Virus record (IMG/VR): IMGVR_UViG_3300033182_000674
Span: 62,001 to 126,000 of that record
Strand: one strand, 5' to 3'
Length of the DNA stretch: 64,000 nucleotides
Under the pieces are notes generated by a model. It made no database searches. It was given only the letters and a program-made list of their open reading frames with translations, and was not told where the DNA came from. Positions 12,206 to 50,031 of the stretch are shown piece after piece. The translations under genes and the position numbers were made by a program. Numbering within the stretch: position 1 is the stretch's first letter; every line of letters starts with the position of its first letter.

Positions 12206-12230
12206 TTACTATTCCTTAAAATTTTAAAAA

Positions 12231-13439: not shown

Positions 13440-13449
13440 TTCTTATTCC

Positions 13450-14979: not shown

Positions 14980-14980
14980 A

Positions 14981-16204: not shown

Positions 16205-16213
16205 TTAATTATC

Positions 16214-16519: not shown

Positions 16520-16565
16520 TTTAATTTTCTCTAAGGTTATGGTTATTAGATCTATTTATATGTTT

Positions 16566-17015: not shown

Positions 17016-17027
17016 TCTTATTCCGCC

Positions 17028-18032: not shown

Positions 18033-18035
18033 ATA

Positions 18036-19850: not shown

Positions 19851-19862
19851 TTTATGCTCCCA

Positions 19863-20099: not shown

Positions 20100-20130
20100 T
20101 GCGTTTATCTCCTTGGGTTTATATCTCTAT

Positions 20131-23118
20131 TTATAGTCTTTTATACATAAACTGCATATATAAATCTTCACCTTTTTGTGTGGTTCCAATTGCAGTTACA
20201 TCGACTGTTAAATAATCACCTTGATTCATACTAATAGATTGATTAGTAACATTTGCTGTAGTTTCACCTGCATTAAAATCAAATGCTGATGCTAAATTAC
20301 CATTTTTCTTAGCTTGAATAGTTACAGTATTATCTGCTGCAGTGCCTAGTTTAGCAGTAATAACAGATATCTGTAAATTATATGGTGCGTACCATCTAGT
20401 AGAACCAGTTAATAATTCAAGTTCACCAATAGTATGAAGATTAATTGGTGTTAATAACTCATCTTTAATTTGTGCGGTAACATCAGATGCAGTTACTTTA
20501 TCTGATGTATTAGTTTTAATAATGTCTTCAATCTTAGCTTTTAATTGTGGTGTCTCATCTAAATACTCACCAATATCTTTTGCTTTAAATGTTTTACTTG
20601 CTGCATCAAATACAAGTGTCATATTATCAGATGAATCAAATCCTGGCTTAGGTCTAACTTCTACAATTTGATCATGGCCTTCTTGATAATGTTGTAAGTA
20701 TAATCTTAAACGACCAGTACCATCTGATTCAGTCTTAAGATCTTTAATTGTAATTTCACCTTGCATTGCAGCATGAATACCACATTGATAGTACATTGTG
20801 TCAGGTGCTGAATCTGGAATAGTCCATACTAATTGTCCGTGGCCACCATCACTACCTTCTGCTCTTGAATTAACAACACCATGAGTATACTCGCCATAAT
20901 AACTACCACCAGCAAAGTTAGTTCCATCATCTGTTGTTAAATAGAATGGATGTCCAGAAGTATTACTATCTAATACAAATGTGTATGTACCACCTCTATA
21001 GAATGGTCCAAGATCTGTATTTCTACCAACTTGATGTCCGAAGTTATGATAATATGAAACATAAGCGCCTGGATTATCACTATCAAATGACATATAATAA
21101 TTTAAGTTTGGCAGTGTTAATTCTGGAATCGTAATATTTTCAGGCACAGTAAATTGTAATCTTTGTACTTGTGTTGCATTACCACCATTAATATCTGGAT
21201 GAGTAACAGAAGTACTATCATAATTAACCCAATCTACATTATGATCTAATCCTGCAACAGAAATCCATTTCAAGAATAACCCATGTGTTTGAGTCATATT
21301 ACCATGTAATTCATGAGCAAAGTTATTAATAATATAAGAACCTTGTTTATATAATGGTACTGATGATTGAATTTGATTTGTAATTTTTGTTCTTTGGTAT
21401 GAAGTACGACCTGCATCCCATGTCCAAAACCAATTAGTTCCATGACCAGCTAATGGGAAGTCTGCATTTAACACAAATGTTTCAGGTACAATTTCAGTAT
21501 CGAAGTTTGACATTTCTTGTAATTTAGTAGGAACTTGAGTATCACCCAATTTAGTTCCTTCAGGTAATTTAATACCGCCGCTAGTTGAATCTACTTCAAT
21601 CGCTGCTTCACCAATTTTAATACCACCAGTAGGTGTTGCTCCAAGTGCTGTATTACCAAGATAAATTGTACCAGTTGATAAATATAAATCTCTAAACTTA
21701 TGATTAGAATCACCTAAATCATAAAGCTCGTCGCCAGTTGGAATAATATTACCAGTGATAGTGAAACCTTGGTTATTGGTATCTAATGCAAAATTATATG
21801 TACCATCTGAAATTTGATTTCCACTTAATGTTGCATTACCACCATAAAACTTGTTAAAGTTATACATTACAAGTTCAGCACCAGAATCTAATCCTTGTAC
21901 TAATGTAATTGTATTAGCATCAGTTTGTGTATAGTCAGTACCAGCAAATAAGTTAATACCATTTAAGAATACAATTAGATTATCTTGGCTATAATTTAAT
22001 GAGTTACCATTAATATCTGGACCAGTAAATACAGACTGATTCGAATCAGCAACATACTTATAGTTTGTTACTTCTGTTACAGTTTTATATTCGCCAGCAA
22101 TATTATCTCTAACATAATTTAAATGAGTTGAATCAATTAAATCATTTAGGTCAAAACTAAATTTAGAATAATTATTTTGAATTAATACTTCATTACCAGC
22201 ATTCAATGAATCTAAAATAGTAATTGAAGAACCATCAGTAGCAGTAAAGTCTTGACCGTTTGTTAATAGAATACCATTTAAGAATACGTTAGCACTACCA
22301 GGATTATATGATAATGGAGTACCTGAAGCATCATTGCCAGTAAAGGTGCTTTGTCCTTCTATAGTCACATATCTAAATGACTGGAAGTTAATTTCTCCAC
22401 CTTTATATGGAAGGTTCCAGTGATTTGCAAATGATTGTATAGTAAACTGATCATTTAATGCAGCAGCTTGAGTTAAATTAATTGTATTATTAGAAACAGT
22501 ATAATCAGCTGGTGCAGATAACATTACACCATTAATAAAGACTAATATTGCTGCATCATTAATTTCTAATAAATTACCATTATCATCATTACCAGTTAAA
22601 GATGTTTGGCCTTGAGTAGTAGTAAAGAAATAAGTTGCAATAGATGATTTACCAAGATATAAATCACCAACTCTTGATGAAATATAATCAGAGTCAAAAT
22701 ATAATTCTAAGTTTGTATCTGATGTAGGATCATATGTAACAACCGTAATTTCATCATTTAAATTTGCGTTAAACGTTAATGTAATAGATGATCCAGAAAC
22801 AGTATAGTCATCGGTTTCAATTAAGAGAGCGCCATTCAAAAATACCGCAAGGTTTTGTCCAGTGAAACTTAATACATCACCATTATCATCACTATCAGCA
22901 AATATTGTTTGATTAGCTGTTGCGGTATAAACATATTGTTCAACACCGCCAGAAATAAGTTGGCCGCTACCTCCTGTAATGCCAAGAGCATTAACAAAAT
23001 CAACGTCAACAGTATCTTCAATAAGATTAATCGTCTGTTGAGAGTCAACAGAGCCTACACCGCCGCCTTCATTAATAAGCTTCAGTGTATCAAATAGTAA
23101 TCTAGCTTTAGACGACAT
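20131..23118 (-). CDS. Large tail/baseplate-associated protein with tandem repeats and a cupredoxin-like domain
   Basis: Four repeats of Y.A...Q..F.G.D.NG..L......VF.NG..L....DY; I.P..D..YDLG....FRDLYLS; GHPFYL...YYQCGIHAAM. Confidence 0.7.
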   Translation of the reverse strand: MSSKARLLFDTLKLINEGGGVGSVDSQQTINLIEDTVDVDFVNALGITGGSGQLISGGVEQYVYTATANQTIFADSDDNGDVLSFTGQNLAVFLNGALLIETDDYTVSGSSITLTFNANLNDEITVVTYDPTSDTNLELYFDSDYISSRVGDLYLGKSSIATYFFTTTQGQTSLTGNDDNGNLLEINDAAILVFINGVMLSAPADYTVSNNTINLTQAAALNDQFTIQSFANHWNLPYKGGEINFQSFRYVTIEGQSTFTGNDASGTPLSYNPGSANVFLNGILLTNGQDFTATDGSSITILDSLNAGNEVLIQNNYSKFSFDLNDLIDSTHLNYVRDNIAGEYKTVTEVTNYKYVADSNQSVFTGPDINGNSLNYSQDNLIVFLNGINLFAGTDYTQTDANTITLVQGLDSGAELVMYNFNKFYGGNATLSGNQISDGTYNFALDTNNQGFTITGNIIPTGDELYDLGDSNHKFRDLYLSTGTIYLGNTALGATPTGGIKIGEAAIEVDSTSGGIKLPEGTKLGDTQVPTKLQEMSNFDTEIVPETFVLNADFPLAGHGTNWFWTWDAGRTSYQRTKITNQIQSSVPLYKQGSYIINNFAHELHGNMTQTHGLFLKWISVAGLDHNVDWVNYDSTSVTHPDINGGNATQVQRLQFTVPENITIPELTLPNLNYYMSFDSDNPGAYVSYYHNFGHQVGRNTDLGPFYRGGTYTFVLDSNTSGHPFYLTTDDGTNFAGGSYYGEYTHGVVNSRAEGSDGGHGQLVWTIPDSAPDTMYYQCGIHAAMQGEITIKDLKTESDGTGRLRLYLQHYQEGHDQIVEVRPKPGFDSSDNMTLVFDAASKTFKAKDIGEYLDETPQLKAKIEDIIKTNTSDKVTASDVTAQIKDELLTPINLHTIGELELLTGSTRWYAPYNLQISVITAKLGTAADNTVTIQAKKNGNLASAFDFNAGETTANVTNQSISMNQGDYLTVDVTAIGTTQKGEDLYMQFMYKRL

Positions 23119-37368: not shown

Positions 37369-38055
37369 CTATTCTGATATAAAATCATTTGCCATAGGGA
37401 ATACCTCAGCAATCACCTTGGCACATTCTCTTGCAAGTTCCATATGCTCTTTTTGAGTTCCATGACCAGATCGCAATTGGATATAATGTACCCAACTACG
37501 AAGAGTTCCATTGACATACAATCTAGACTTAGTTAAACCTTCTGGTAAAACAACTCTAGCTTGTTCTTTTGCAATACCATTATGGATTGCCCATTCATAT
37601 GCTTCTTTAGCAGCATCAATAACTCTTTTCTGATGTTGTTCAAAAAGATAAGCTAACTTTTGATCATCAGTTGGAATAGAGTTTTGACGATTATTATAAT
37701 CTTGTAGACGACATTCACGTGTTACAAATTGATCACCAAACTCTGCTGGATCTGCATAACGTTGTGAAAATTCTTGGAATGAAAAAGATCTATGACGGAG
37801 TAATTGACGAGCAATATCTCTAGTAGTATCTACTTCAATACAAGCGCTTACCATCTCTAATGGAGACCAATGAGCATGCTTAATAAGATAATTAATAAGC
37901 TTTTCTGAAGTTTCAATATTATATTGATTATTAGGATTAGATACTCTAGCTGCAAATGCAATCAACTCTTGAACATTATTCATTTGTTCAGATAGATTGT
38001 CATCAAATACATCTTTATGTAATTGTGAGTAACTTATAAGTTTTGCTTTCATCAT
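37369..38055 (-). CDS. thyX: FAD-dependent thymidylate synthase
   Basis: RHRSFSFQEFSQRY ThyX signature, H.SP.E, EQAR.VLP. Confidence 0.95.
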   Translation of the reverse strand: MMKAKLISYSQLHKDVFDDNLSEQMNNVQELIAFAARVSNPNNQYNIETSEKLINYLIKHAHWSPLEMVSACIEVDTTRDIARQLLRHRSFSFQEFSQRYADPAEFGDQFVTRECRLQDYNNRQNSIPTDDQKLAYLFEQHQKRVIDAAKEAYEWAIHNGIAKEQARVVLPEGLTKSRLYVNGTLRSWVHYIQLRSGHGTQKEHMELARECAKVIAEVFPMANDFISE

Positions 38056-39425
38056 AATTTAAAATCCGTAAATTTGCTATCATCTGGAGAAGGTTGCTTT
38101 TGATAAACTGGTGTATCATCAACTAATGTTTGTTCACCTTCATCAACATCATACAATCTCATTTTAGATCGGTCAACACCAATAACAAAACGTTTCTTGT
38201 ACGTTGGATCATTATATCTATTCTTCAATTGTTTTACTGCAATTTGACCCATATTCTCAAGTTCTTCAGTTGAAACAATCGCAAACATTAAATCGGCTGT
38301 AGCAGGTAGACCAAATGATTCTGAAGTATCTTCAAGACCAACATCAGTATTACCATAACCAGAACGAGTTGTTTGTGTGGCTGACATAATTGGTGCATCA
38401 AACTCTACAGCAAGACCACGTAGTTCTTCAGCGATTGCTTTGATATAACTATAAGAGTTAATAGAACCACCCATACCTTTCATACGAGATGAAGCACAGA
38501 TGTTTAAGTAATCAATAAAGATAATATCTGGTTTGAATGATTTCTTAAGTTGTAATTCATTCAATAAAGCTCTAAAGTGGCTAGCATGTGCTTGGCCAGT
38601 TGGATATTCTTTAATGATTAATTTACCATTAGTCTTATTAGAAATATCTCTTACTTTATCAGAGAACATATCTTTGGTCAAGTTTTCAAGTTGATCAATA
38701 GGTACATTTAGTAAGTTAGCATCGATACGTTCTGCGATACGTTCTTCTGCCATTTCCATAGTTATATATAAAACATTCTTGCTCTGAGACAAAACCGCGG
38801 CAGCATGATGACACATAAACAATGACTTACCCACACCAGTACCAGCAAGGATAATATTCAACGATTTCTTTGGCAAACCACCTTTTGTAATAAGATTGAA
38901 GTAATTCAAATCGAAAGGTAAACGTTCTTCATCACGATGATAGAATTCAAAACGTTCTTGATAATTTTCTAAGTAGTCGTGACCAACGTTATTATCAAAT
39001 GAAACCGCAAGAGCTTTTGTTAAAATGTCTGGTAATGAATTCTTAGTAAGAGTGTTGTGTTTACCATCAATAATCTGAATAGATTCCATAACCGCATTAT
39101 ACAATGCACGATCTTGACACCATTTTTCAGTCGTATCATATAACCATGTCTTATCAGTTTCTTCATGAGCAAAAAGATTAGGAAGTACTTCTACTGCATG
39201 GCTATATTGTTCTTCATTCAAATTTTCAAGATTATCAATTTCAATCTTAAACGCTTCAGCTGTTGGTAGTTTATTATACTTACCAACAAACTTACCAGCT
39301 TCTTTAAATAAAATTTTGTATACACCTTCAAAATAATCAGGTTTAATGAAAGGCAAAACCTTTCTCATATATTCTTCATTGGTAAGAATATTTTTTAATA
39401 CAACTTGTTCGATATTTGTGTTCAA
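38052..39425 (-). CDS. 41: Replicative DNA helicase gp41
   Basis: AGTGVGKS, EMAEERIAERIDAN, IDYLNIC, SESFGLPATAD. Confidence 0.96.
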   Translation of the reverse strand: MNTNIEQVVLKNILTNEEYMRKVLPFIKPDYFEGVYKILFKEAGKFVGKYNKLPTAEAFKIEIDNLENLNEEQYSHAVEVLPNLFAHEETDKTWLYDTTEKWCQDRALYNAVMESIQIIDGKHNTLTKNSLPDILTKALAVSFDNNVGHDYLENYQERFEFYHRDEERLPFDLNYFNLITKGGLPKKSLNIILAGTGVGKSLFMCHHAAAVLSQSKNVLYITMEMAEERIAERIDANLLNVPIDQLENLTKDMFSDKVRDISNKTNGKLIIKEYPTGQAHASHFRALLNELQLKKSFKPDIIFIDYLNICASSRMKGMGGSINSYSYIKAIAEELRGLAVEFDAPIMSATQTTRSGYGNTDVGLEDTSESFGLPATADLMFAIVSTEELENMGQIAVKQLKNRYNDPTYKKRFVIGVDRSKMRLYDVDEGEQTLVDDTPVYQKQPSPDDSKFTDFKL

Positions 39426-39766
39426 ATTACGTCCTTCATGGTAATGCCTTCATTATTTACAATAGCTGATTCAATAATAGCTAGTAAAGTATCTGCAGCT
39501 TGTTGTTGTAGCCCAACTGTATCTTCTGTTACAGTTTCATCTGGACTACTTATAAGACTAAAATCAAATGTCATGTAAGATTGTTGTTCATCTAACTCAC
39601 CATTTTCATCTTCACCTTTAATAGTAATCTTGCCATATTCAATTACAGTTTCAGGATAATCACCAGTTAGAAAACGAACACGCCAAAGATCACCGTCAGC
39701 TGGAACAAGTTGATAATCTTTATTCTCATAAAGACCAGTTTGCGGTTTATATTTTTCTTTACTCAT
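39422..39766 (-). CDS. Hypothetical protein at the gp40 position between uvsX and 41
   Basis: Synteny with T4 uvsX-40-41; start reassigned to 39766. Confidence 0.5.
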   Translation of the reverse strand: MSKEKYKPQTGLYENKDYQLVPADGDLWRVRFLTGDYPETVIEYGKITIKGEDENGELDEQQSYMTFDFSLISSPDETVTEDTVGLQQQAADTLLAIIESAIVNNEGITMKDVI

Positions 39767-40814
39767 CTGCATTCTCCGCAATCTCTTCCATATCAACTAA
39801 TGAATTGTAGCCAATAGAGTATTGCTTCTTAAGAAACTCTTTAAAGTCTGTACCTTCAAAGATTGGAGTCCAGAATTCTTCTTCTAACGTTTGGGCTTCT
39901 CGTACTTTAGGCTCCACAAGTTCACCAGTTTCTTTATCCACCCGACAATACCAACCATTGCTAGGCTTAACGACGTAACCACCAGCAAGGCCAGCATCGA
40001 GAAGACCACTATAACGCTGAACACCACCTTCCCAAGAAACAGTAATAGGAATTTTAGATTTTTCTTTAACATATCTTGACTTCTCTACATTAATTACAAA
40101 ATGATAACCTTGGATTTCTGTACCTTTCTTATCTTGTTGACGGCCAAGGATCCAGATGTTATCAGCTGAATAGTAGATACCAGTACCACCACCAACTACA
40201 TCTTTAGGGAACAAACCAATCTCTTTATAGGTGTGGTTAATAGCCAACAATGGAATATCTTTCATTGTTAGATAAGGTGTTGTCATACGGAACAAACCTT
40301 TAAGTGCTTTAGCGCGAGACATATCAGCAACTGATTTTTCATTCAATGCATCTTCCATTTCTTTCTTTGATGCAAGGTTACCAATAGAATCAATAACAAC
40401 AATTACTTTATCACCACGTTCGATTTGCTCAAGCTGGCCAATCATATCAAACTTAAGTTCTTCTACGTTAGTAATAGGAGTATGAAGAACACGTGAAGTG
40501 TCAATACCATATTGTTCAAAGTAAGATTGTGGTGAACCAAATTCTGAATCATAGAATAGCATAACAGCATCATCATATTTTTTCATATAAGCTGCAGCCA
40601 TCAACAAAGCAAAAGAAGTTTTAAAGTGTTTAGATGGACCAGCAAGAACTGTTAGTCCAGGAGTAACACCGCCATCAACAGAACCAGATAACGCAACGTT
40701 AATCATAGGAACGTTCGTTGGTACCATATCTTTTTCTTTAAAAAATTTAGATTCAGAAAGAACTTCAGTATGCTTAAGCTTAGAGTTCTTTTTAAGTTTG
40801 TCCATTATACTCAT
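39759..40814 (-). CDS. uvsX: RecA-like recombinase UvsX
   Basis: AGPSKHFKT, YDSEFG, DSIGNLASKKE, DMSRAK. Confidence 0.96.
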   Translation of the reverse strand: MSIMDKLKKNSKLKHTEVLSESKFFKEKDMVPTNVPMINVALSGSVDGGVTPGLTVLAGPSKHFKTSFALLMAAAYMKKYDDAVMLFYDSEFGSPQSYFEQYGIDTSRVLHTPITNVEELKFDMIGQLEQIERGDKVIVVIDSIGNLASKKEMEDALNEKSVADMSRAKALKGLFRMTTPYLTMKDIPLLAINHTYKEIGLFPKDVVGGGTGIYYSADNIWILGRQQDKKGTEIQGYHFVINVEKSRYVKEKSKIPITVSWEGGVQRYSGLLDAGLAGGYVVKPSNGWYCRVDKETGELVEPKVREAQTLEEEFWTPIFEGTDFKEFLKKQYSIGYNSLVDMEEIAENADE

Positions 40815-41206: not shown

Positions 41207-42400
41207 TTACATAAAACCGTCAAGAGTTGATGGCTCGTATTCAGACCAGAATGTCTGAGCTTTATTATCTTGAACAGCATATGGTGCTTCAATAGTATCA
41301 ATATTGCCACCTAAGAAGTTTTTAATATTAGTTGCCATATCCATTGCAGTACTTACTGGAACATTTTGTGCAATCATATTAAGATTTCTGCGTCCACCGT
41401 GCAAGATAAAATCTTTTGGCATCTTCATAATATCAAGAGCTTCTCTTGTATTGATATAACGATTTTCATCAGGGTGCGTAAGAGTAGTTACAAAATGACC
41501 AACAAAAGCACCAATATGTCCTTTACCAATCTCTGTCATCTTACGCATTAAGTTACCACCATTATCTAACTTATCTTGCATACGCTTACATTTTTGAGCA
41601 ATACTATCATGACCATTTGCTCTCATCCATTTAGCAACTTCAGTATATTTTATTTTATTTGCTTCAATATAAACCAATGGATTAGTCGACTTCTCAATCA
41701 TATTAAAGAAATCCATATGAGTAATTCCACCGTGCATTTCTTCTAAAATATATTGATAGTATGGATTATCAGTTGGCTTTTGTAAATTAGTTGGACTATT
41801 CCACATTAAGTCATTTACAATATCATCATGTTTAGATGATCTAATCTGTTCTTCAATACGAGTAAAAGGCCGTTTATAATATTCAAATACTGGAATCTTA
41901 TTACCTTTCCAAAAGAAGTAAAAGGTTCTATCACGTACTTGTGATAAGCCATGAAGAAGAGATTTAGTTTTGTATATACTAAGTGTATATCCATTTTCTC
42001 TTGCAAGCTTTCTCATTTGATGAACGATTGGTGCACCCATTTTACTTGCAAGACGTGGAGCATTTTCTCCCCAAAAAACAGCAGGTTTAATTTCTTCAAG
42101 AACATATTTAGCTGATGTAATCATCCAATCATTAGTTGTACTATCACTACGACTACTTGGGCTTAAAGAAGATAAACCTGCACAAGGACAAACTGCATTC
42201 ACTACGTCCACAGATTTATTTTGTAAATCACCTTGATCTAATAAATGATAAGGTACTTCATTATTATAATATTCTAAAAGTTGTTTATCATTATTTTCAA
42301 AAGGTGTATAAGAGAGAATATAATCAGGTTTATTACCAAATACATTCTGCATTGCAATCGTTTCACCACCAATAAGTGGTACTATACTAGCGTACTTCAT
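41207..42400 (-). CDS. DNA cytosine-C5 methyltransferase-like protein
   Basis: Motif IV CPCAGLS, VI ENA, VIII Q.R.R, IX/X R....RE....M..P.DF...QNVP; degenerate motif I (PLIGG). Confidence 0.75.
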   Translation of the reverse strand: MKYASIVPLIGGETIAMQNVFGNKPDYILSYTPFENNDKQLLEYYNNEVPYHLLDQGDLQNKSVDVVNAVCPCAGLSSLSPSSRSDSTTNDWMITSAKYVLEEIKPAVFWGENAPRLASKMGAPIVHQMRKLARENGYTLSIYKTKSLLHGLSQVRDRTFYFFWKGNKIPVFEYYKRPFTRIEEQIRSSKHDDIVNDLMWNSPTNLQKPTDNPYYQYILEEMHGGITHMDFFNMIEKSTNPLVYIEANKIKYTEVAKWMRANGHDSIAQKCKRMQDKLDNGGNLMRKMTEIGKGHIGAFVGHFVTTLTHPDENRYINTREALDIMKMPKDFILHGGRRNLNMIAQNVPVSTAMDMATNIKNFLGGNIDTIEAPYAVQDNKAQTFWSEYEPSTLDGFM

Positions 42401-43400
42401 TTAAAAATTTCCTCGCAGTTGCTAGTGCAGAATTAATTGCTTGGTGCATATCAACATAAACGTACATACCACAACGACCAATAAACTGCATCTTAGTTTC
42501 ATCTACCATATCTTTATACAGTTTATATATCTTTCTATTCTTGCCTTCTACATCTTTTACTGGATAATAACGCTCAAGATTATTATCACGATAGTCACAC
42601 GGTTCTTCATAAGTAAGAACAGTCATCTTATTATTATCGCCATGACCTGGAATATTTTTCCATTCGGTTACTCGAGTATATGGACCATCATGAGTAAAGT
42701 TAACAGTACCAGTTGGTAGCACTTTAGACATTGGTAATTCCACATTATGGAACTTAATAGAGCGATACGGTAATTCGCCATGACAAAAATGGAAGTAATC
42801 ATCAATTGGCATTGAATTAAAGATATAATCGTAATCATCTTCCATTTCATATGTAAATTCTGTATCTAAATTTACTGTAATGTTTTCATGTAAGAAAATA
42901 CTTTCAAAGACTTCAGTATAACCATTCTTTGGCATCATCTGATATTCATCATTAGGAAAATATAATTCGTTATCATCATCGCGAGTAGGAATACGATTAA
43001 TAATTGATGGATCTAGTTCATCAAGTGTTTTACCCCACATTTTTAGAGTATAAGGTCTAAAGAAAATATCTAAAACGTTTTCTTCACCAACAATCTCTTT
43101 AGTTTCTTTATTTACTGGAAGAGTTACATAACGGCCATCACTTAACTGTGCTTTTACTTTATGTTTATAATCAATCCATTCAGTAAACTTAGATAGCCAA
43201 TCAACAACATCTTTATTATTAGTATGAAACAAATGTGGACCATACTGGTGGATTCTGATGCCATTCGCATCAACATAATCATAGGCATTACCACCAATAT
43301 GGTCGCGTTTATCGATGACAGTTACTTCATGATCTGCTTCTGCTAATTCACGAGCAATAACTGCACCAGAAAATCCAGCACCAACTACTAAGACTTTCAT
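42387..43400 (-). CDS. glf: UDP-galactopyranose mutase
   Basis: VVGAGFSG, HIGGNAYD, H.YGPHLFHT, LPYRS, RYYP, GRCG.Y.Y.DMHQAI. Confidence 0.92.
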   Translation of the reverse strand: MKVLVVGAGFSGAVIARELAEADHEVTVIDKRDHIGGNAYDYVDANGIRIHQYGPHLFHTNNKDVVDWLSKFTEWIDYKHKVKAQLSDGRYVTLPVNKETKEIVGEENVLDIFFRPYTLKMWGKTLDELDPSIINRIPTRDDDNELYFPNDEYQMMPKNGYTEVFESIFLHENITVNLDTEFTYEMEDDYDYIFNSMPIDDYFHFCHGELPYRSIKFHNVELPMSKVLPTGTVNFTHDGPYTRVTEWKNIPGHGDNNKMTVLTYEEPCDYRDNNLERYYPVKDVEGKNRKIYKLYKDMVDETKMQFIGRCGMYVYVDMHQAINSALATARKFLNEVR

Positions 43401-44509
43401 AGAATAACTCCAAGTTCTTTTTGCTGTAGTTCTTTATCTAATGGATGATTCTTATATAGCATATGTTTTTGTGCTGCTGCTGTTTCCATCAATTCGTCAA
43501 GAGACATTTGCTCTACATCATGAGCAGTTAAGCTTGCAAGTTTTTCATCTCCATATAATAAAAACATTTCATCATATGCACCAATAAGAATAGAACCTGC
43601 GTCGGCAACTTGTAATGGACGAGCTCTCCACCAGCCTGATCCTGCATGATCATAACCTGGCATTAAACAACCCCATTGTTCTGCATAAACTTTACACATA
43701 TCACCTTCACCAAGCCGACGTTGTTTTTCTTTACGAGAACCAAAGAATTCAATCTCCCAATTAGTCACATTTTGTTTCTTTAACCACTTAGCAGTCTTAC
43801 CTTGTACTAATGAAGCAAAGTTAAAGATCTTAGCTTTATTAGAAGGAGATACAGTATCTTCAGCTTCAGTTAACGTCATTTGTTGTTCCATAAAATCCAT
43901 TTCATCTACAGGAATATCACCACGATCACCGGGTTTACGGTTACGATGATATGGATTAGGATTATAACCAACCAACAATTCTTTAGGATAGTCAATCAAC
44001 TTACTTAGATCACCACCCATAAAGACAGACATTAATACACGAGCTTTCTTTTCGCCAATATATTTTACTGCATCTAAAAGAATATCAGTATGTGGTTCCA
44101 ATACTTCACGTGAAAGAGTTGGATCACAACCTTGACTTTGTTGAATAGTAAACTCTTTTAATAGAGATTCTTTATCAGTGCATGATTGAATACCTTTAAA
44201 AATATCAGCTGTTTGCCAATCATCAAATGCTAGTACAAGATTTTCTTTTGGTGTAGCGTGAATAGCCCATAGACCATTATAAAAAGCAAGTTGTAATGCT
44301 TGACGTGGTGAAGCAAGAAAACAAATAACACGATGATATTCAGATAAATCTTCACCAATATTAACAAGACGTTGTTCTACTTCATAACCCATATCTTCTA
44401 AACAACGTATTAAAGAATAATGTGAAGGAACTACTTTCAATTGCTGGCGTAAATAAAAATCTTTTGTTGTTTGATTCTTATTCATACCAGTGATTAGAAT
44501 TTTTTTCAT
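43397..44509 (-). CDS. Putative GT-B DNA glycosyltransferase (T4 beta-glucosyltransferase-like)
   Basis: KVVPS...L..MGYEV...D...Y.R.I N-terminus and R..Q...AG.IL. C-terminal motif resemble T4 BGT as I recall it; start reassigned to 44509 (TAATG overlap). Confidence 0.6.
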   Translation of the reverse strand: MKKILITGMNKNQTTKDFYLRQQLKVVPSHYSLIRCLEDMGYEVEQRLVNIGEDLSEYHRVICFLASPRQALQLAFYNGLWAIHATPKENLVLAFDDWQTADIFKGIQSCTDKESLLKEFTIQQSQGCDPTLSREVLEPHTDILLDAVKYIGEKKARVLMSVFMGGDLSKLIDYPKELLVGYNPNPYHRNRKPGDRGDIPVDEMDFMEQQMTLTEAEDTVSPSNKAKIFNFASLVQGKTAKWLKKQNVTNWEIEFFGSRKEKQRRLGEGDMCKVYAEQWGCLMPGYDHAGSGWWRARPLQVADAGSILIGAYDEMFLLYGDEKLASLTAHDVEQMSLDELMETAAAQKHMLYKNHPLDKELQQKELGVIL

Positions 44510-45366
44510 TATTTTAACTCCATTTGATATGCTGATTCGCACATATCTTTTAGATCACGTTTAGTTTCCAAATACTTAGATTTGTTATCAACACACAACT
44601 CAGCTGGATCGCCTTCGCGGCGTGGTCCATATTCAATTTTAAAGTTGTTTGTACATTGTACCATTATATCACAAACCTCTGCATTTGTAAACCCTTTACC
44701 AGAACCAAGACATTCATAGTCTTTATTCTCAGGAGTATTTAGTGCAGCATTACAGATAGCATCTGCGAGATCTACCACATGAATATAATCACGAATACAT
44801 GTTCCATCACGCGTAGGATAATCATCTCCAAAGATAACCATCTTCTCTCTTTTACCAGCAGCAACCTCAGCTGCTACTCTAATAATATGAGTCGATTCAC
44901 CAATCTGTCTAAACTCACCACCAGATCCAGCAACATTAAAGAATCTAAAGATAGTATAATTCTTTGCCATCTGTTTAATAACATCTTCAGCCGCTACTTT
45001 AGATTTAGCATATGGAGAAATAGGATCAAATGCGCCAGCAGTAGAAGCAAAGATAAAGTGATCACAATCTACATTCTTTAAAACTTTCATTGTCTTATGA
45101 AGATTAGTATCATAATATTTTGCAGGATTAGTCATCGATTCTGCAACAGAAATATAACCTGCACAATGTACTACTACATCATATCGTCCAACCCACAAAG
45201 CAGCATCATGAATATCATAATGTGTTAGGTACTTTCTAACTGGTTTAGCATTAGGTGAATCTTCAATATCAACACCTGTTACTTTAAATCCAGCATCATA
45301 TAATGCTTTTGCGGTATGAGAACCAATATAACCATTTACACCTGTTACTAATGCAGTCTTACTCAT
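44509..45366 (-). CDS. galE: UDP-glucose 4-epimerase-like SDR
   Basis: TG..GYIGSH, ES...P.KYY..N, YAKSK, R.FNVAG, DGTCIRDYIHV.DLA, RREGDP. Confidence 0.88.
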   Translation of the reverse strand: MSKTALVTGVNGYIGSHTAKALYDAGFKVTGVDIEDSPNAKPVRKYLTHYDIHDAALWVGRYDVVVHCAGYISVAESMTNPAKYYDTNLHKTMKVLKNVDCDHFIFASTAGAFDPISPYAKSKVAAEDVIKQMAKNYTIFRFFNVAGSGGEFRQIGESTHIIRVAAEVAAGKREKMVIFGDDYPTRDGTCIRDYIHVVDLADAICNAALNTPENKDYECLGSGKGFTNAEVCDIMVQCTNNFKIEYGPRREGDPAELCVDNKSKYLETKRDLKDMCESAYQMELK

Positions 45367-45835
45367 TTTCTACTCCCAAGCGTTTAATATTAACTTTTGC
45401 TTCATTGCACATCGAAACAGTAGTATCATAAGACTCTTGCCAAATTGGTGGAATCTCTCCTTCCATATCCCAATAGATGTTTTTGACACCTACTTGGATA
45501 ACACCTTTGGCACATTCAGAGCACATAGGAAGCCCCCAGATGTAAAGATCTGATCCGTCTAAAGATACACCATTATACGTTGCATTATATATGCAGTTCA
45601 TTTCTGCGTGCACGACGTATTTATATTTAGTCTCGCGATCCTCATATCGGTTCTCGTCATCATTGATTCCTCGTGGGAAACCATTATAACCCTGTGCAAG
45701 TACTTGACCTTTTGAGCCGACTGCTACAGCACCGATCTTTTTAGATGGATCCTTAGACCAACCAGAAAATTCTTTCGCTAAATTCATATAGCGGTTTTGC
45801 CATGATTTATTAACAGGCCACATAATTAATCCCAC
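45359..45835 (-). CDS. cd: dCMP deaminase
   Basis: SKDPS, GYNGFPRG, HAE.N, P.C.EC. Confidence 0.92.
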   Translation of the reverse strand: MGLIMWPVNKSWQNRYMNLAKEFSGWSKDPSKKIGAVAVGSKGQVLAQGYNGFPRGINDDENRYEDRETKYKYVVHAEMNCIYNATYNGVSLDGSDLYIWGLPMCSECAKGVIQVGVKNIYWDMEGEIPPIWQESYDTTVSMCNEAKVNIKRLGVENE

Positions 45836-46371
45836 AAACTTCTAAAATATTTTCCAAATAAACGAAATCCATTGTCCATACGTTTAGAATATTCATCATA
45901 CTTTTCTTTATCAAACTTTCCTTTTAAAGAACTTGTATCCATTTCATACCACTCATATTCTTCATTTTCACCCTCATCATTAGGAAATAAAAGTAATTGA
46001 GCTGGTCCAACACCAGTACTCTCCATTTCAAATAAACTTACTGAATCGCTATCATAGTTAAAGAACTGGTCTTCCCATTCGTTATTAAGACTAGCAAAAG
46101 CAAAAATCATTTCATCAATTACATAATCCCAAGCTTTAAAATGATATGGATCTGTTTCACCTACTTCAATAGGCAAATCACAGCGTAAGCGTTCTGGACG
46201 ATCTTCCATATCAACAAATGGCGCACCATGTTTTTCCTTTTTTAATTGTCTCAACATTGGTTCAACTAACAATGCTAGTGTATGATCCATTGACCAAGTA
46301 TCGTAATCATCTATATGAATAGAGACATCACGATAACCTTCTTCTACATATGGTCCAATTTGTACATTCAT
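45826..46371 (-). CDS. Conserved phage hypothetical protein
   Basis: DTWSMD.TLA, W....DEMIFAF, GF.LFGKY...LWD; start reassigned to 46371 (ATGA overlap). Confidence 0.65.
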   Translation of the reverse strand: MNVQIGPYVEEGYRDVSIHIDDYDTWSMDHTLALLVEPMLRQLKKEKHGAPFVDMEDRPERLRCDLPIEVGETDPYHFKAWDYVIDEMIFAFASLNNEWEDQFFNYDSDSVSLFEMESTGVGPAQLLLFPNDEGENEEYEWYEMDTSSLKGKFDKEKYDEYSKRMDNGFRLFGKYFRSLWD

Positions 46372-46823
46372 TTCATTAAATCTCCAAAGAAAGAGAAAGC
46401 AACATCTTTTGCAACTTGATCTGTTACTTCCCACATCGGTATCATAAGATTAATTTCCTCTGATGTTGGTGGTACAAACATTTTATTTGTATCATCAAAC
46501 CGACCTTCATTAATAGTATTCATCCAAATTACATAATCAGGTTTAAGCAACTTACGCGTTTCAGGTGTAGGAGAAATCATATCAACAATAGAATAAGGAT
46601 ATACAGAATTATCTACAAGTTTACGCATACGAGTTGCAGCTCGAATACGACCTTCTTCTGAAAAATCCCAATCTTGATATGCTTCACGAATTTTATCTGC
46701 ATTAAACCAATTAGGAATTACGCCATGATTTTCAAATTCAGTTTTTAGTTTTTCAGCAAATGTAGTCTTACCTGAACCAGGTAGACCCATCACTAATATC
46801 ATTTTATTCGACATCCCAATCAT
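46368..46823 (-). CDS. Adenylylsulfate-kinase-like P-loop kinase
   Basis: GLPGSGKTT, NAD.IR, DFS.EGR.R. Confidence 0.75.
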   Translation of the reverse strand: MIGMSNKMILVMGLPGSGKTTFAEKLKTEFENHGVIPNWFNADKIREAYQDWDFSEEGRIRAATRMRKLVDNSVYPYSIVDMISPTPETRKLLKPDYVIWMNTINEGRFDDTNKMFVPPTSEEINLMIPMWEVTDQVAKDVAFSFFGDLMK

Positions 46824-47511
46824 TCCTAATTAAATCAAAATGGCGTTCATATACATGTAAATTTTGAACTTGCCAGTAAATTGTACTTGGTGTAATAACA
46901 TCATCAATAGTTTCTGTTTGACGATTAATGTCATCACATAGTTTACGAAGAACATATTTTTGCCAAGCAAAATCATTCTTATATCCAAAGACGACATCAT
47001 TTGATCGCATTTGAACTACTGCATACATTTTTTTATTACGAATATAATAAGTTACACCATTAGTACAAATAAAATCAGACTTACCATCTTCATTAAATTC
47101 TGTCCAGATAGTTGGACGTTGATAAACCATTTCAGCACGACGGCCGTCTGGATTATTGAGTAACTCATTTAATACTTTCTCGTATTGATTACCATATTGT
47201 TCAGAGAAAATTAGTAATCCATAATTTGAATTAATAAGGCCGTCGCTGTTAGCAGCATACTTCCAAGCAGCAGGAGGATCGCGATCTTCGCCGAAAATGT
47301 CATTGATATTGTTCGATTGTTTTTCATACCATTCAATCTCCTTCATGATATATTCATTATTAGGTTTACCAAAGATTGCTGGTTCATCAGCAATAAAAGA
47401 AGCGCCAATCCATTCAATAGTCTTAGCACCAGTTTTATCTGTGGTAAAGTTCTTTGCTCTTAGTTCGCCTTCAAAGAAAGCACGGACATTTTTAACTGTT
47501 GGGATATTCAT
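46804..47511 (-). CDS. 42: dCMP hydroxymethylase (T4 gp42 homolog)
   Basis: DKTG.KTIE.IGASF.ADEP.IFG, INSNYG, SDF.CTN, MRSNDVVFG..ND.AWQKYVL, LHVY.RHF, all closely matching T4 gp42; Asp retained at the cytosine-specificity position. Confidence 0.92.
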   Translation of the reverse strand: MNIPTVKNVRAFFEGELRAKNFTTDKTGAKTIEWIGASFIADEPAIFGKPNNEYIMKEIEWYEKQSNNINDIFGEDRDPPAAWKYAANSDGLINSNYGLLIFSEQYGNQYEKVLNELLNNPDGRRAEMVYQRPTIWTEFNEDGKSDFICTNGVTYYIRNKKMYAVVQMRSNDVVFGYKNDFAWQKYVLRKLCDDINRQTETIDDVITPSTIYWQVQNLHVYERHFDLIRNDWDVE

Positions 47512-47930
47512 TATTTAGCCTTTTCAATATTATAAACTGATTTACGTAAACCACTACTTGAGAATCTATGATCTCGTTTATTAAAGTAAAGTTCAATATC
47601 ACGTCGACGACATTCATCTTTACCAGTAAAGTCTTTATCACGATACTCATCACCGAGAATACGAATATTAATCGGATACATGTTTATTATATCAAGTAAA
47701 TCGGCTTCTGTACAATACGGAATGATTTCATCTACATATTTTACTGCAGCCAATTGTGTATGTCTTTCTACAATGGTTTGTACCGGTGAATTCTTTTCAG
47801 GACGATCAACTGATGGATCTACTTGTAATCCACAAATTAAATAATCACATCGTGCTTTTGCATCACGCAACATTGTGATATGACCAGCATGTAATAAATC
47901 AAATGTACTACAAGTAAATCCTACAATCAT
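47511..47930 (-). CDS. TagD/RfaE-like cytidylyltransferase
   Basis: FDLLHAGH, ER...L....YVDE, R.H..SSS. Confidence 0.85.
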   Translation of the reverse strand: MIVGFTCSTFDLLHAGHITMLRDAKARCDYLICGLQVDPSVDRPEKNSPVQTIVERHTQLAAVKYVDEIIPYCTEADLLDIINMYPINIRILGDEYRDKDFTGKDECRRRDIELYFNKRDHRFSSSGLRKSVYNIEKAK

Positions 47931-48040
47931 TGCTTCTTTTCCTTCGCTTTGTTATTCATCAATTTACAAGATCCCCATTTACATGATGGGTTTATTTTCT
48001 TTTTACATACTACACAAGTATCAGTCTGAGATGAATTCAT
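47927..48040 (-). CDS. Small Cys/Lys-rich peptide (37 aa), not in the ORF track
   Basis: MNSSQTDTCVVCKKKINPSCKWGSCKLMNNKAKEKKQ; stop overlaps the next ATG (ATGA). Confidence 0.4.
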   Translation of the reverse strand: MNSSQTDTCVVCKKKINPSCKWGSCKLMNNKAKEKKQ

Positions 48041-48377
48041 TGTATTCTTCTTCTGTCATAAATGATTCAATTAAACTAGTATCTTCAACTTCTAATTTAA
48101 ACATCCATACAGATGCATCATCATTTAAAGTTTCTGGTGTATCTAGAATATCTTCATTAACTTCGACTACTGTTCCAGCCATTGGACAATAAACATCTGA
48201 TGCTGCTTTTACAGATTCAACTACTGCACAATCTTCATCTGCTTCATAGTACTTACCAACTTCTGGTAACTCAATGAAAACTAAATCACCAAGTAATTCT
48301 GCAGCATGCGCAGTAATACCAACAAAGACGTAATCTCCGTCTTGTTCTACCCATTCGTGTTCTTTTGTATAACGCAT
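48021..48377 (-). CDS. gcvH: Glycine cleavage system H protein
   Basis: YT.EHEWV, VGIT..A...LGD.VF.ELP, lipoyl-Lys motif VESVKAASD. Confidence 0.93.
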   Translation of the reverse strand: MRYTKEHEWVEQDGDYVFVGITAHAAELLGDLVFIELPEVGKYYEADEDCAVVESVKAASDVYCPMAGTVVEVNEDILDTPETLNDDASVWMFKLEVEDTSLIESFMTEEEYNEFISD

Positions 48378-48721
48378 TATTCTTTTCTTCCTCCGTCAAA
48401 GACGCAAACAAAGTATAAGCCATTCTCATTAGCATATACTCTATGAAAAGCACCATCTGGTATTTGAATAATATCACCTGCTCTTACATTGAACACTTCA
48501 TCATCAATTTCCATTTCACCATCGCCATACATGAAAAAATAAACTTCTTCTTGTCCTTCATGGCTATGACCATTGGTTGCTTTATTTGGTTGTAATCTTG
48601 TTGAACTAAGTACTAGGTTATTTAGTAATGTATTATCAGTGACCACATAACGATCATCTGATTTTACTACATTACCATTTACTACCCACCCAGCATGAAC
48701 ATAATCTTCAATATCAATCAT
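48377..48721 (-). CDS. Cupin-domain protein
   Basis: GHSH..QEEVY.F..G.G and GD...IP.G.FHRV. Confidence 0.85.
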   Translation of the reverse strand: MIDIEDYVHAGWVVNGNVVKSDDRYVVTDNTLLNNLVLSSTRLQPNKATNGHSHEGQEEVYFFMYGDGEMEIDDEVFNVRAGDIIQIPDGAFHRVYANENGLYFVCVFDGGRKE

Positions 48722-49481
48722 TATTAAAACCTAACAATTTATTGTTATATTCCAATAGAGATTTAGTAGCAGTTGGATCAATGCCTACACTTTCAGCCCA
48801 AGCACACCAACCATAGATATCTTTTGGAATACATTTACTATTAGCTCCACGATTATCAGGGAAGACAAAAGTCCACCATAGATTTTGTCGTGGGTCATCA
48901 CCATAAACAGCTTCTCGAATAGTATAATAATCTACTCCAGCTGCTTCACATGCATCATATAATTCTTGGCATTGCATTACCTTATAGAAAATTGCACGAT
49001 TTTCAGAGAATTTAATAATCTCTGCTTCATATGCAGATACTTGACGAATATTAACATTAGCATTATAAGCTTGTTGATAACATTCAATAACTTTACGAGT
49101 ATCTTCTTTAGTACCACCAAGAATCATAAACTGACGAGAATCCATTTGTAAGAATGGATGATTAGGTGTTTCACCAAGATATTCTGGTTGAACTACAATG
49201 CGTTTATTATATTTCTTAGCCATCTCATCAGCAAATCCTGGTTGAGTAGCAGAACGAATAACAATGAAATCACATCCGCATTCTTTAATAGCATCTTCTA
49301 CAGCAGAACAATCTAATCCATCGCCTTGATTCCACGGAGTAGGTACGGCAAGAAAAGCAATATCACAATTTTCTAAAGGCTTTGTAAATCCTTCGATATA
49401 TTTATCGTAAACTTGTGCATCAGGAAAAAGTTTTTGTGTTGCTTTGCCAATCCAACCGTATCCAATGATTCCTACTTTCAT
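48714..49481 (-). CDS. UDP-glucose/GDP-mannose dehydrogenase-like protein (lacks C-terminal domain)
   Basis: GIIGYG.IG, AVPTP, IRS, PEYL, AE..K..EN, CIPKD. Confidence 0.8.
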   Translation of the reverse strand: MKVGIIGYGWIGKATQKLFPDAQVYDKYIEGFTKPLENCDIAFLAVPTPWNQGDGLDCSAVEDAIKECGCDFIVIRSATQPGFADEMAKKYNKRIVVQPEYLGETPNHPFLQMDSRQFMILGGTKEDTRKVIECYQQAYNANVNIRQVSAYEAEIIKFSENRAIFYKVMQCQELYDACEAAGVDYYTIREAVYGDDPRQNLWWTFVFPDNRGANSKCIPKDIYGWCAWAESVGIDPTATKSLLEYNNKLLGFNND

Positions 49482-49493: not shown

Positions 49494-49727
49494 CTAAACA
49501 ATTTTTTGTTTTGTACATTCTTCAAAGGTCTTAAAGGTTCGATCAAACTTAATCTCGTATAATTCCATTACACCAATAAGAAGATTTATAAGTTTATCTT
49601 GATGCTCTGGTTTCATACCTTCAAAGAATGGATCATCACCAACGAACTTATATATGTCTTTTATATCTGTTGTTATATTCCAACAGTCAAGAATTTCTTG
49701 TTCTAGGTCAAATCGTGTTTTATTCAT
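49494..49727 (-). CDS. Conserved phage hypothetical protein
   Basis: RFDLEQ.I..CW....DI and N.L.G...LY..KF motifs. Confidence 0.6.
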   Translation of the reverse strand: MNKTRFDLEQEILDCWNITTDIKDIYKFVGDDPFFEGMKPEHQDKLINLLIGVMELYEIKFDRTFKTFEECTKQKIV

Positions 49728-50031
49728 TGTCGGCTGCCACATATCTATCATCCCATTTCTTTTGTTCTAAAAAGTAAACATACAAGAAAGCACATTGTGT
49801 TAAAGCATGTGCTAAATGAGGTTCACCAGATTCTGGATCAAAGTCTTCACCACTCCAAAAAGAATTTAGATGTCGTTGAAGAGAAGAATAAGAACGTGAC
49901 CATTCAGAAGGATCTTTACGCCAGTTATTAGCGCCATATTTTGTAGCACCAAACTCTAGTACTGTAGCCATAGCTTCGATAACTTCTGGGGGTACTAAAG
50001 CGATAGGTGCTTTACCATCATCGTATTTCAT
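49720..50031 (-). CDS. DUF5664-like (dATP/dGTP diphosphohydrolase N-terminal-like) protein
   Basis: K.D.GK....L.P, V..FGA.KYG..NW, RHL....GE..DPESG..HLAHA. Confidence 0.85.
   Translation of the reverse strand: MKYDDGKAPIALVPPEVIEAMATVLEFGATKYGANNWRKDPSEWSRSYSSLQRHLNSFWSGEDFDPESGEPHLAHALTQCAFLYVYFLEQKKWDDRYVAADNE

Follow-up and report, generated by a model that had tools for sequence, protein, structure and literature searches.

In this study we analysed a 64,000-nucleotide stretch of DNA (hereafter the window), corresponding to positions 62,001 to 126,000 of the IMG/VR virus record IMGVR_UViG_3300033182_000674, from the 219.7-kb genome of a marine T4-like phage that is rated 100% complete. 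The window encodes, on the minus strand, a 397-aa protein with the DNA cytosine-C5 methyltransferase (C5-MTase) fold, embedded in a cluster of sugar-nucleotide, nucleotide-metabolism and replication genes that follows the T4 order 41-40-uvsX-(beta-gt)-42 (Table 1). The ATG of the C5-MTase-like gene lies at 42400, 14 nt upstream of the end of the glf stop codon (TAG at 42389-42387), with GAGG about 10 nt upstream of the ATG, consistent with translational coupling. Only genetic code table 11 was used. A GcvH gene (one-carbon metabolism) also lies in the cluster.

Table 1. Coordinates of the C5-MTase-like gene, its motifs and neighbouring genes in the window.
Position	Strand	Feature	Supporting evidence
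41207..42400	-	C5-MTase-fold enzyme, 397 aa	Pfam PF00145 E=4.7e-20, 72.7 bits (cut-off 22); NCBIfam TIGR00675 35.4 bits (cut-off 100.65); AF2 model; Foldseek; family motif logo
42365..42388	-	Motif I variant SIVPLIGG, residues 5-12; family consensus (I/V)-P-L-(I/V)-G-G in place of F-x-G-x-G-G	P, L, G and G in 129-131 of 133 representatives; hhalign maps canonical F to I/V7 and the first G to L9
42170..42187	-	Motif IV PCAGLS, residues 72-77; catalytic Cys73 kept, Ala in place of the Gln of PCQ	Cys in 132 of 133; position 74 is A in 112, S in 14, G in 6; alignments to MET1 and HhaI
42056..42067	-	Motif VI ENAP, residues 112-115; catalytic Glu kept, Ala in place of the Val of ENV	E in 133 of 133, N in 131, A in 127
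41927..41941	-	Motif VIII QVRDR, residues 154-158	Q in 130, R in 133 and R in 133 of 133
41357..41368	-	Motif X QNVP, residues 345-348; Gln345 at the position of HhaI Asn304 and CmoX Arg350	HMMER alignments to HaeIII, CmoX and MET1; hhalign; Q in 131 of 133
42387..43400	-	UDP-galactopyranose mutase (Glf), overlapping the C5-MTase-like start by 14 nt	PF03275 E=8e-51; TIGR00031 E=7e-83
43397..44542	-	381-aa protein, probable GT-B DNA glycosyltransferase, in the variable segment between uvsX and gene 42 where T4 carries beta-gt	phrog_14998; no Pfam match; weak AF2 model (pLDDT 65); best Foldseek hit T4 beta-glucosyltransferase 1qkj, E=1.1e-3, prob 0.99; T4 gene order
44509..45366	-	GalE-like UDP-glucose 4-epimerase	PF01370 E=7e-35; TIGR01179 E=1.7e-59
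45359..45835	-	dCMP deaminase	PF00383 E=1.3e-16; phrog_174 E=1e-37
45826..46434	-	202-aa viral protein of unknown function	phrog_11543; an atlas search returned only viral hypothetical proteins
46368..46823	-	151-aa P-loop kinase, candidate hmdCMP kinase	phrog_10255 E=7e-24, APS-kinase-like; no T4 gp1 homolog in the genome
46804..47511	-	T4 gp42-type dCMP hydroxymethylase (5hmdCMP synthase signature)	PDB 1b49 E=9e-71; segments SDFICTN, MRSND and KNDFAW give D/C/D/D at ThyA positions L143/C146/D169/N177
47511..47930	-	Small nucleotidyltransferase (cytidylyl/adenylyltransferase-like), conserved just upstream of gp42 in relatives	PF01467 E=3e-11; TIGR02199 and TIGR01518 at about 1e-17; synteny
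49720..50031	-	MazG-like NTP pyrophosphohydrolase, the only candidate dCTPase seen, substrate unknown	PF18909 E=5e-34; gp56-type family phrog_173 has no match in this genome
37369..40814	-	Flanking T4-like core genes: ThyX (37369-38055), gp41-like helicase (38052-39425), UvsX (39759-40814)	Profile searches; T4 gene order

Fold, motifs and family-wide conservation

To characterize the enzyme, we combined profile searches, structure prediction and structural alignment. The AF2 model had pLDDT 83.5 and pTM 0.83, and the top 50 Foldseek hits were all DNA C5-MTases, led by M.HaeIII, CmoX (8yf3), M.HhaI, MET1 and DNMT1 with E values of 1e-12 to 1e-9. The domain order is also that of canonical enzymes, with a recognition domain between motifs VIII and IX. 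The curated profiles disagreed, since the Pfam score exceeds its cut-off whereas the NCBIfam dcm score falls far below it, and so profile membership is left unsettled; the Pfam alignment starts only at residue 35, so motif I lies outside it. Single-sequence and profile searches of the PDB gave only marginal sequence matches, and a profile of the N-terminal 75 aa found no methyltransferase in the PDB at E<=10.

The initial annotation, which gave no strand, had described intact catalytic PC, EN and QxRxR motifs, an atypical SAM-binding motif I and translational coupling to glf, and this observation is confirmed. Beyond the motifs in Table 1, motif IX reads R314..RE..MKMPKDF. We then asked whether the unusual motif I is peculiar to this protein, and found that it belongs to a remodelling of the SAM and transfer pocket that holds across 133 diverse representatives sharing only about 30% identity. 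Namely, canonical F becomes I/V and G becomes L in motif I, which in canonical enzymes makes the SAM adenine and methionine contacts, PCQ becomes PCA, ENV becomes ENA, the motif X GN becomes (C/A/T/S)-Gln, and the motif II Glu probably becomes Ser. The last assignment rests on an hhalign alignment that places Ser30 at the end of strand 2, but the N-terminal alignment to canonical enzymes has low confidence and a conserved N37-D38 (an acidic residue in 130 of 133) lies 7-8 residues later, so the fate of the acidic ribose contact is not decided by this comparison. The GG pair, N37-D38 and D55 are conserved and could still bind an adenosyl cofactor.

The family comprises at least 360 clusters at 50% identity, was found only on viral contigs and is essentially absent from cellular genomes and restriction-modification contexts. 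Its recognition domain is much more variable than the catalytic core (19% against 43% identity), as is seen in sequence-specific methylases. Among long family members only one fusion was informative, to a CXXC zinc finger, a domain that reads unmodified CpG, and cluster names gave no further information.

Genomic linkage to a gp42-type dCMP hydroxymethylase

The premise that the genome encodes gp42 holds, and the gp42 homolog keeps the Cys and both diagnostic Asp residues and has the 5hmC signature (Asp at ThyA positions 143, 169 and 177, plus Cys146; PMC13326640). The 5-hydroxycytosine (RB69-type) pathway was rejected because Asp is kept at the ThyA-D169 position. A lack of linkage between homologs and gp42 had been set out in advance as the result that would count against a role in the hmC pathway, and our survey found the opposite. 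In the close clade, 24 of 24 loci with more than 8 kb upstream carry gp42 1.3-6.3 kb upstream. Of 29 distant-clade viral records, 19 carry a gp42-type enzyme, all with the D/C/D/D signature; the 9 records with no thymidylate-synthase-family match are fragments 7-25% complete, one record (26% complete) has only a canonical ThyA, and all 3 records that are at least 90% complete have the gp42 type. A gp42-type enzyme was also found in 9 of 9 MAG contigs, while the cultured carriers cyanophage S-TIM5 and Pseudoalteromonas phage XG4 carry a dCMP-type thymidylate synthase homolog nearby; all partners checked have the hydroxymethylase signature except that of S-TIM5. The atypical motif I is conserved in all of these homologs. 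Wherever enough sequence is available, the same genome carries the hydroxymethylase, usually 0.6-6.5 kb away. For two distant clades (labelled P0287 and P0278) no IMG/VR relative was close enough to score gp42 in whole genomes, and at four loci (L090, L095-L097) no gp42 is seen within 10 kb. Part of the co-occurrence could reflect shared ancestry of a large phage group. The reverse does not hold, because T4 has gp42 and no such gene.

DNA glycosyltransferase (GT) and NDP-sugar genes usually lie beside the enzyme, also in distant members. In the window, the weak model of the 381-aa neighbour and its match to T4 beta-glucosyltransferase leave it undecided whether an hmC glycosyltransferase is present; relatives carry a PF11440 AGT-like gene in the same slot, but no relation between the two was detectable.

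Next, we searched for other pathway components. A search for the gp56-type dCTPase (phrog_173) gave no match in this genome or in three complete relatives, with a positive T4 control, and T4 gp1 had no match; the MazG-like protein and the P-loop kinase are possible substitutes. The idea that the enzyme replaces a missing dCTPase was not supported, since gp56-type genes coexist with family members in at least six genomes (XG4 and the genomes labelled G004, G005, G009, G017 and G029), and in XG4 the gene lies directly beside the family member. Little unmodified C should remain in those genomes. No TET (PF12851, E<=1) or CmoA (TIGR00740, E<=0.1) was found in the genome, and no canonical C5-MTase in the phage loci retrieved. 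A search for a SAM lyase in the genome gave no match, but the control search also found nothing, making it uninformative; the distant locus L095 does carry such a gene. In contrast, T4-like phage RB43 has a canonical-motif C5-MTase, and its only thymidylate synthase is a true one. Public data comprised assembled contigs of marine and estuary metagenomes without raw reads or RNA, and base modification was not read from them. The genome is CpG-depleted (0.64, against 0.95 in T4 at the same GC).

Possible roles and relation to known systems

The initial annotation argued that a genome whose cytosines are replaced by hmC offers little substrate for ordinary methylation, and proposed that the protein caps residual C, edits hmC or performs a non-methyl step. 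This interpretation is partly supported: the paradox is real and the protein belongs to the hmC module, but no computation here shows which of the three options it performs, and an ordinary SAM-dependent methylase is not excluded.

Our tentative reading is that the gene encodes a catalytically competent member of a large viral branch of the C5-MTase fold, acting after replication on the phage's own hydroxymethylated DNA. The branch keeps everything needed to flip a cytosine-type base out of DNA and add a cysteine to its C6 (the PC cysteine, the ENx glutamate, QxRxR and motif IX), while it has replaced in one conserved way the residues that in ordinary enzymes hold SAM and line the methyl-transfer pocket. 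In this view, the enzyme would flip out 5hmC, which fits a pocket widened by Gln-to-Ala and Val-to-Ala, Cys73 would add to C6, and the activated 5-CH2OH group would be exchanged or removed by loss of water or formaldehyde, which ordinary C5-MTases do slowly in vitro, at sites chosen by the recognition domain and with a still unknown co-substrate in the rebuilt former SAM site. HhaI Q82 and N304 line the space around the transferred group, and Q82A lowers methylation about 16-fold (PMC3526304). The chemistry is feasible, since a canonical C5-MTase forms covalent complexes with 5hmC DNA and removes its hydroxymethyl group in a Cys-dependent way (PMC11347137). What our analysis demonstrates is the fold, the motifs, their conservation across the family and the genomic linkage, whereas hmC as the substrate, the chemistry and the loss of canonical SAM use are inferred. 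There is no direct evidence for hmC binding or for loss of SAM binding; function was not assayed, and neither ligands nor protein-protein complexes were modelled, the latter because no such binding is claimed. The variable recognition domain, the CXXC fusion and the CpG depletion, which a CpG-directed 5mC enzyme could produce, also speak against this reading.

Taken furthest, and with slightly less confidence, the family might be the natural counterpart of the atypical reactions of C5-MTases: a SAM-independent or new-cofactor enzyme that, by covalent Cys-C6 catalysis, swaps or removes the hydroxymethyl group of 5hmC in DNA, giving a cytosine hypermodification or a site-specific hmC eraser not yet described in any organism. 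If the family acts on hmC, or uses a cofactor other than SAM, it adds a new enzymatic route to phage DNA hypermodification and would supply a natural enzyme for site-specific chemistry on 5hmC, of the kind sought for epigenome sequencing and labelling. Even as a plain methylase, the pairing of this large, marine, viral family with a dCMP hydroxymethylase implies that hmC replacement in many environmental T4-like phages is incomplete or patterned, which would change how their resistance to restriction, type IV and CRISPR defences should be modelled. S-TIM5 and XG4 make the question directly accessible.

The main rival, doubtful but close behind, is an ordinary SAM-dependent, sequence-specific 5mC methyltransferase that methylates cytosines which escaped pre-replicative hydroxymethylation, a gap filler whose unusual motifs are lineage-specific variation that still binds SAM. 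The PF00145 fold, the complete catalytic residues, the conserved GG, N37-D38 and D55, the variable recognition domain, the CXXC fusion and the CpG depletion fit this view; without a gp56-type dCTPase here and in three complete relatives, dCTP exclusion may be incomplete, and HhaI Q82A still methylates. However, at least six carriers do have such a dCTPase, a protective methylase would be useful without gp42 yet no member was found without it where the genome could be checked fully, the positions matching canonical SAM and pocket contacts are all replaced family-wide, and the NCBIfam score is far below its cut-off.

An unlikely alternative is a host-directed enzyme attacking unmodified cytosines, which in an infected cell would exist only in host DNA, by methylating them, adding another group, deaminating them or trapping itself covalently, in an Alc/EndoIV-like discrimination in which the phage is immune because its own C5 positions are occupied. 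The one-way dependence on gp42 would then reflect a need for self-immunity, the CXXC fusion would fit an unmodified-CpG target, and the position among DNA-metabolism genes in T4-like order suggests early expression, although timing was not examined. A tblastn search with T4 Dam found no match; T4 Alc, denA and denB were not searched. Against it, close physical and translational coupling to GT and sugar genes in many lineages points to phage-DNA modification, any C5-blocking base would give immunity yet the partners checked have the hydroxymethylase signature except in S-TIM5, and no benefit of 5mC on host DNA is evident. Still less likely is a post-replicative DNA cytosine hydroxymethylase that adds a one-carbon aldehyde unit to residual C, as C5-MTases can do with formaldehyde in vitro (Liutkeviciute et al. 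2009), creating 5hmC for the neighbouring GT to decorate; the remodelled SAM pocket, the adjacency to GTs even in the four loci without gp42 within 10 kb, and the GcvH gene would fit, but it would be redundant with gp42 in every genome that could be checked fully, no folate-binding features were seen and free formaldehyde is an unlikely physiological donor. A non-catalytic DNA- or hmC-binding reader, or a scaffold presenting bases to the GT, is suggested only by coupling and co-location with GT and sugar genes and is very unlikely given the near-absolute conservation of Cys, Glu and both Arg.

Among known systems, canonical bacterial and phage C5-MTases (M.HhaI, M.HaeIII, E. coli Dcm) share the fold (Foldseek E about 1e-11 to 1e-12), motifs IV, VI, VIII and IX and the domain order, and differ in the remodelled positions, the sub-threshold NCBIfam score, the viral distribution without restriction-modification context and the pairing with a dCMP hydroxymethylase. 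CmoX, the phage C5-carboxymethyltransferase that uses carboxy-SAM (PDB 8yf3; PMC12783734), is the second-best structural hit and a C5-MTase homolog whose transferred group differs because the residue at the HhaI-N304 position differs, but CmoX has there an Arg that contacts the carboxyl of Cx-SAM and needs CmoA, whereas this family has Gln, the genome lacks CmoA and the partner is gp42 rather than CmoA or CmoY; CmoX-type transfer was therefore rejected. In phage C5-MT/TET (5mYOX)/GT clusters (PMC8256090; bioRxiv 2023.12.21.572611) a C5-MTase-family gene likewise sits beside DNA glycosyltransferases and sugar enzymes, but there the methylase makes 5mC that TET oxidises to 5hmC after replication; here TET is absent, which ruled out this pathway, hmC is supplied before replication by gp42, and a methylase step has no obvious role. 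The engineered M.HhaI Q82A/Y254S/N304A and M.MpeI N374K (PMC3526304; cited in PMC12783734) were altered to change the transferred group, and the HhaI positions Q82 and N304 are the ones naturally altered here (Ala and Gln), in a family-wide change combined with changes in motifs I and II whose activity is unknown. Finally, the T4 hmC pathway (gp42, gp1, gp56, alpha- and beta-glucosyltransferase) and the Glf-dependent galactosylation pathway of RL38J1 (PMC13326640) are also close, and the locus shares the T4 order (41 - uvsX - GT slot - 42), a gp42 ortholog, a BGT-like GT-B protein and Glf to make UDP-galactofuranose. It differs in lacking gp1 and gp56 homologs and in the extra C5-MTase-like gene, which T4 and RL38J1 are not reported to have, and RL38J1 uses 5hoC whereas the gp42 homolog here has the 5hmC signature. 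Since the locus carries both GalE and Glf, a galactofuranosyl decoration is predicted.

The C5-methyltransferase-like gene and its neighborhood

The window (bases 62001-126000) derives from a 219,676-bp IMG/VR virus record that is rated 100% complete, with 34% GC and T4-like core genes, namely gp41, UvsX, gp42, gp43 and gp55. To characterize the flagged ORF, which encodes 397 aa, we compared it with profile and structure databases. It matches Pfam PF00145 at E=4.7e-20, although only from residue 35 onward, and reaches 35 bits against the 100.65-bit cut-off of NCBI's dcm model. An AlphaFold2 model (pLDDT 83.5) matched only DNA C5-methyltransferases: M.HaeIII, CmoX, M.HhaI, MET1 and DNMT1. The initial annotation was correct in what it observed, as all the motifs it named are present at the stated place: SIVPLIGG (residues 5-12), PC (72-73), EN (112-113) and QVRDR (154-158). 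The translational coupling to glf that it described also agrees with the sequence, in which the ATG overlaps the end of glf by 14 nt, behind a GAGG.

Reading the minus strand, the genes are a small nucleotidyltransferase, a gp42 ortholog (E=9e-71 to T4 dCMP hydroxymethylase), a P-loop kinase, a 202-aa unknown protein, dCMP deaminase, a GalE-like epimerase, a 381-aa protein whose weak model best matches T4 beta-glucosyltransferase, Glf, the methyltransferase (MT)-like gene, a 107-aa ORF, and then UvsX, the gp41-like helicase and ThyX. T4 has the order 41-40-uvsX-(segA)-beta-gt-42, and the whole cassette therefore occupies the T4 beta-gt slot. A 2026 paper showed that some gp42 homologs make 5-hydroxy-dCMP, and that these carry Asn at the ThyA-D169 position (PMC13326640). 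The window enzyme keeps Asp there, keeps Asp at positions 143 and 177, and keeps the Cys, and is therefore predicted to make 5hmdCMP. GalE, Glf and a BGT-like transferase together predict a galactofuranosyl decoration of hmC, which is an inference. In the same slot, relatives of the window cassette (loci L007, L010, L017 and L024) carry an AGT-like transferase (PF11440), UDP-glucose dehydrogenase, an epimerase, radical-SAM-like genes and QueC-like genes instead of Glf, and the sugar cassette between gp42 and the MT-like gene is swapped between otherwise syntenic phages. Among the genes beyond the cluster, GcvH may boost the methylene-tetrahydrofolate supply for gp42 and ThyX.

Features of the window and of related loci, with their positions
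Record	Position	Strand	Feature
Window	41207-42400	minus	C5-methyltransferase-like ORF
Window	48021-48377, 48377-48721 and 48714-49481	minus	Glycine-cleavage H-protein (GcvH) gene, a cupin and a short UDP-glucose-dehydrogenase-like gene, just upstream of the hmC cluster
Window	49720-50031	minus	103-aa MazG-like protein matching PF18909 (dATP/dGTP diphosphohydrolase N-terminal domain)
L003 (cyanophage S-TIM5)	5766-6602		Annotated ThyA
L089 (Pseudoalteromonas phage XG4, unannotated record)	271-816 and 7031-7486		gp42-like frame near the record start, containing an in-frame TAA; gp56-type dCTPase gene directly downstream of the MT-like gene
L090 (distant locus)	1-2045		DNA polymerase B gene
L095 (distant locus)	5260-5904		SAM-lyase-like gene (PF23780)
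L096 (distant locus)	11262-21281		Very large glycan gene cluster

A large viral family and its conserved motifs

The protein is one of a large, distinct, viral family. A word search found 2347 relatives, and a profile search of 1.8 billion representatives found 360 clusters at E<1e-30. In 133 full-length representatives, only 28-40% identical to the query outside its own clade, the catalytic residues are invariant and the non-canonical residues are equally invariant, the conserved motifs being (I/V)PL(I/V)GG, (C/P)PCAGLS, ENAP, HGxPQxRxR and xQNVP. HMMER alignments to HaeIII, CmoX and MET1 put the family's Gln at the HhaI-N304 / CmoX-R350 position and Ala at the Q82 position, and a profile-profile alignment to seven canonical enzymes (probability 99.3%) agrees. 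The latter also maps canonical F to I/V, the first Gly to Leu and, with low confidence, the motif II Glu to Ser, although the N-terminal alignment to canonical enzymes is weak. Taken as a profile, the N-terminal 75 residues find no methyltransferase in the PDB. Q82 and N304 are the residues that line the transferred group in M.HhaI, where Q82A lowers methylation about 16-fold (PMC3526304), and in CmoX an Arg at the N304 position selects carboxy-SAM (PMC12783734). The atypical motif I is therefore part of a coherent rebuild of the cofactor side of the active site, while the cytosine-attacking side is preserved.

Linkage to gp42-type hydroxymethylases

Next, we examined whether homologs are linked to gp42, since the initial annotation had proposed that unlinked homologs would count against its reading. 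In the close clade, of 80 IMG/VR loci, all 24 with more than 8 kb upstream have gp42 1.3-6.3 kb upstream, and 55 of 59 have uvsX just downstream. The genes in between vary and include AGT-like or BGT-like transferases, Glf, UDP-glucose dehydrogenase, epimerases and radical-SAM-like genes, and some loci have no transferase there at all. In the distant clade, 20 of 29 whole records have a thymidylate-synthase-family gene, and 19 of them have one with the full hydroxymethylase signature. The nine without are fragments 7-25% complete, whereas all three records that are at least 90% complete have it, and thirteen have it within 0.6-6.5 kb of the MT-like gene. For four distant loci (L090 and L095-L097) only about 8-10 kb on each side could be seen, and no gp42 was present there. 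The only ten hits among 185,579 species genomes of cellular organisms are MAG contigs that look like phage, and nine of nine long ones carry gp42 nearby.

Among cultured phages, members occur only in S-TIM5-type cyanophages and in Pseudoalteromonas phage XG4. The annotated ThyA of S-TIM5 has Asp at the ThyA-N177 position and Cys at the L143 position, and is probably a dCMP-modifying enzyme rather than a thymidylate synthase, so that S-TIM5 DNA may carry a modified cytosine. XG4 has a gp42-like gene 4.6 kb away from the MT-like gene and a gp56-like gene next door. In contrast, T4-like phage RB43 has a canonical-motif methylase and only a true thymidylate synthase. Literature searches found no paper that treats this family or the gp42 plus C5-MTase pairing, although one preprint notes methyltransferases near ThyS-associated glycosyltransferases without interpreting them. 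The dependence runs one way, because T4 has gp42 without this gene.

Candidate functions and genome composition

The Cys/Glu/Arg machinery is under strong selection, so the enzyme needs a cytosine-type substrate. In a genome whose C5 positions are filled before replication, there are three candidates: leftover unmodified C, host DNA, or hmC itself. The interpretation in the initial annotation, that the protein might cap residual C, edit hmC or perform a non-methyl step, was supported only in part, by the linkage to gp42. We tested whether carriers lack a dCTPase, which would leave gaps. The genome studied here and three complete relatives do lack a gp56-type gene, but at least six other carriers have one, so this does not explain the link. 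Because no gp56-type gene is present, the MazG-like protein is the only candidate for the dCTPase role in this genome, and one close relative (L076) has it next to gp42. TET and CmoA are absent.

We tentatively rank a post-replicative reaction on hydroxymethylated DNA first. A canonical methylase is known to form covalent complexes with 5hmC DNA and to strip its hydroxymethyl group in a cysteine-dependent way (PMC11347137). Three features point the same way: smaller residues at the Q82 and V121 positions, strict dependence on a hydroxymethylase, and recurrent placement beside glycosyltransferases, including in distant lineages. This ranking was made without ligand docking, biochemistry or modification-aware reads, and the public runs hold only contigs. 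One distant member, in L096, is followed directly by the glycan cluster, which includes a CMP-sugar synthetase fused to GT8, GT29 (sialyltransferase-like) fused to GT8, capsule-synthesis genes, pyruvyl-transferase genes and further methyltransferase genes, on a phage contig that also carries Gp23, and this may encode an elaborate DNA glycan. In L095, the SAM-lyase-like gene lies five genes upstream of a family member that sits next to a GT1-like gene, and a phage that destroys SAM while keeping this enzyme would argue against SAM dependence.

An ordinary SAM methylase acting as gap filler comes second and appears somewhat less likely. It is supported by the conservation of the GG pair, N37-D38 and D55, by the variable recognition domain, by the CpG depletion of the genome, and by one member, the metagenomic protein P0217 (598 aa), that is fused at its C-terminus to a CXXC zinc finger (PF02008, E=7e-7), the domain that reads unmodified CpG in DNMT1, TET and MLL. 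A host-directed enzyme with hmC as self-immunity is unlikely, and a DNA hydroxymethylase and, last, a non-catalytic role are more doubtful still.

Across the whole genome, window included, CpG observed/expected is 0.64, with CpA/TpG at 1.21, whereas T4 gives 0.95 at the same 34% GC. Other contigs that carry the family, among them L090 and L097, range from 0.37 to 0.84, and these values could reflect either CpG-directed C5 chemistry or general marine AT-rich composition. In the whole genome of the window, CATG is strongly under-represented, with 494 observed against 935 expected (z=-25), CCATGG occurs 0 times against 21 expected, and GGTACC 15 against 52, suggesting restriction avoidance that the cytosine modification does not cover. 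In L090, the DNA polymerase B gene is split by an intein (PF14890).
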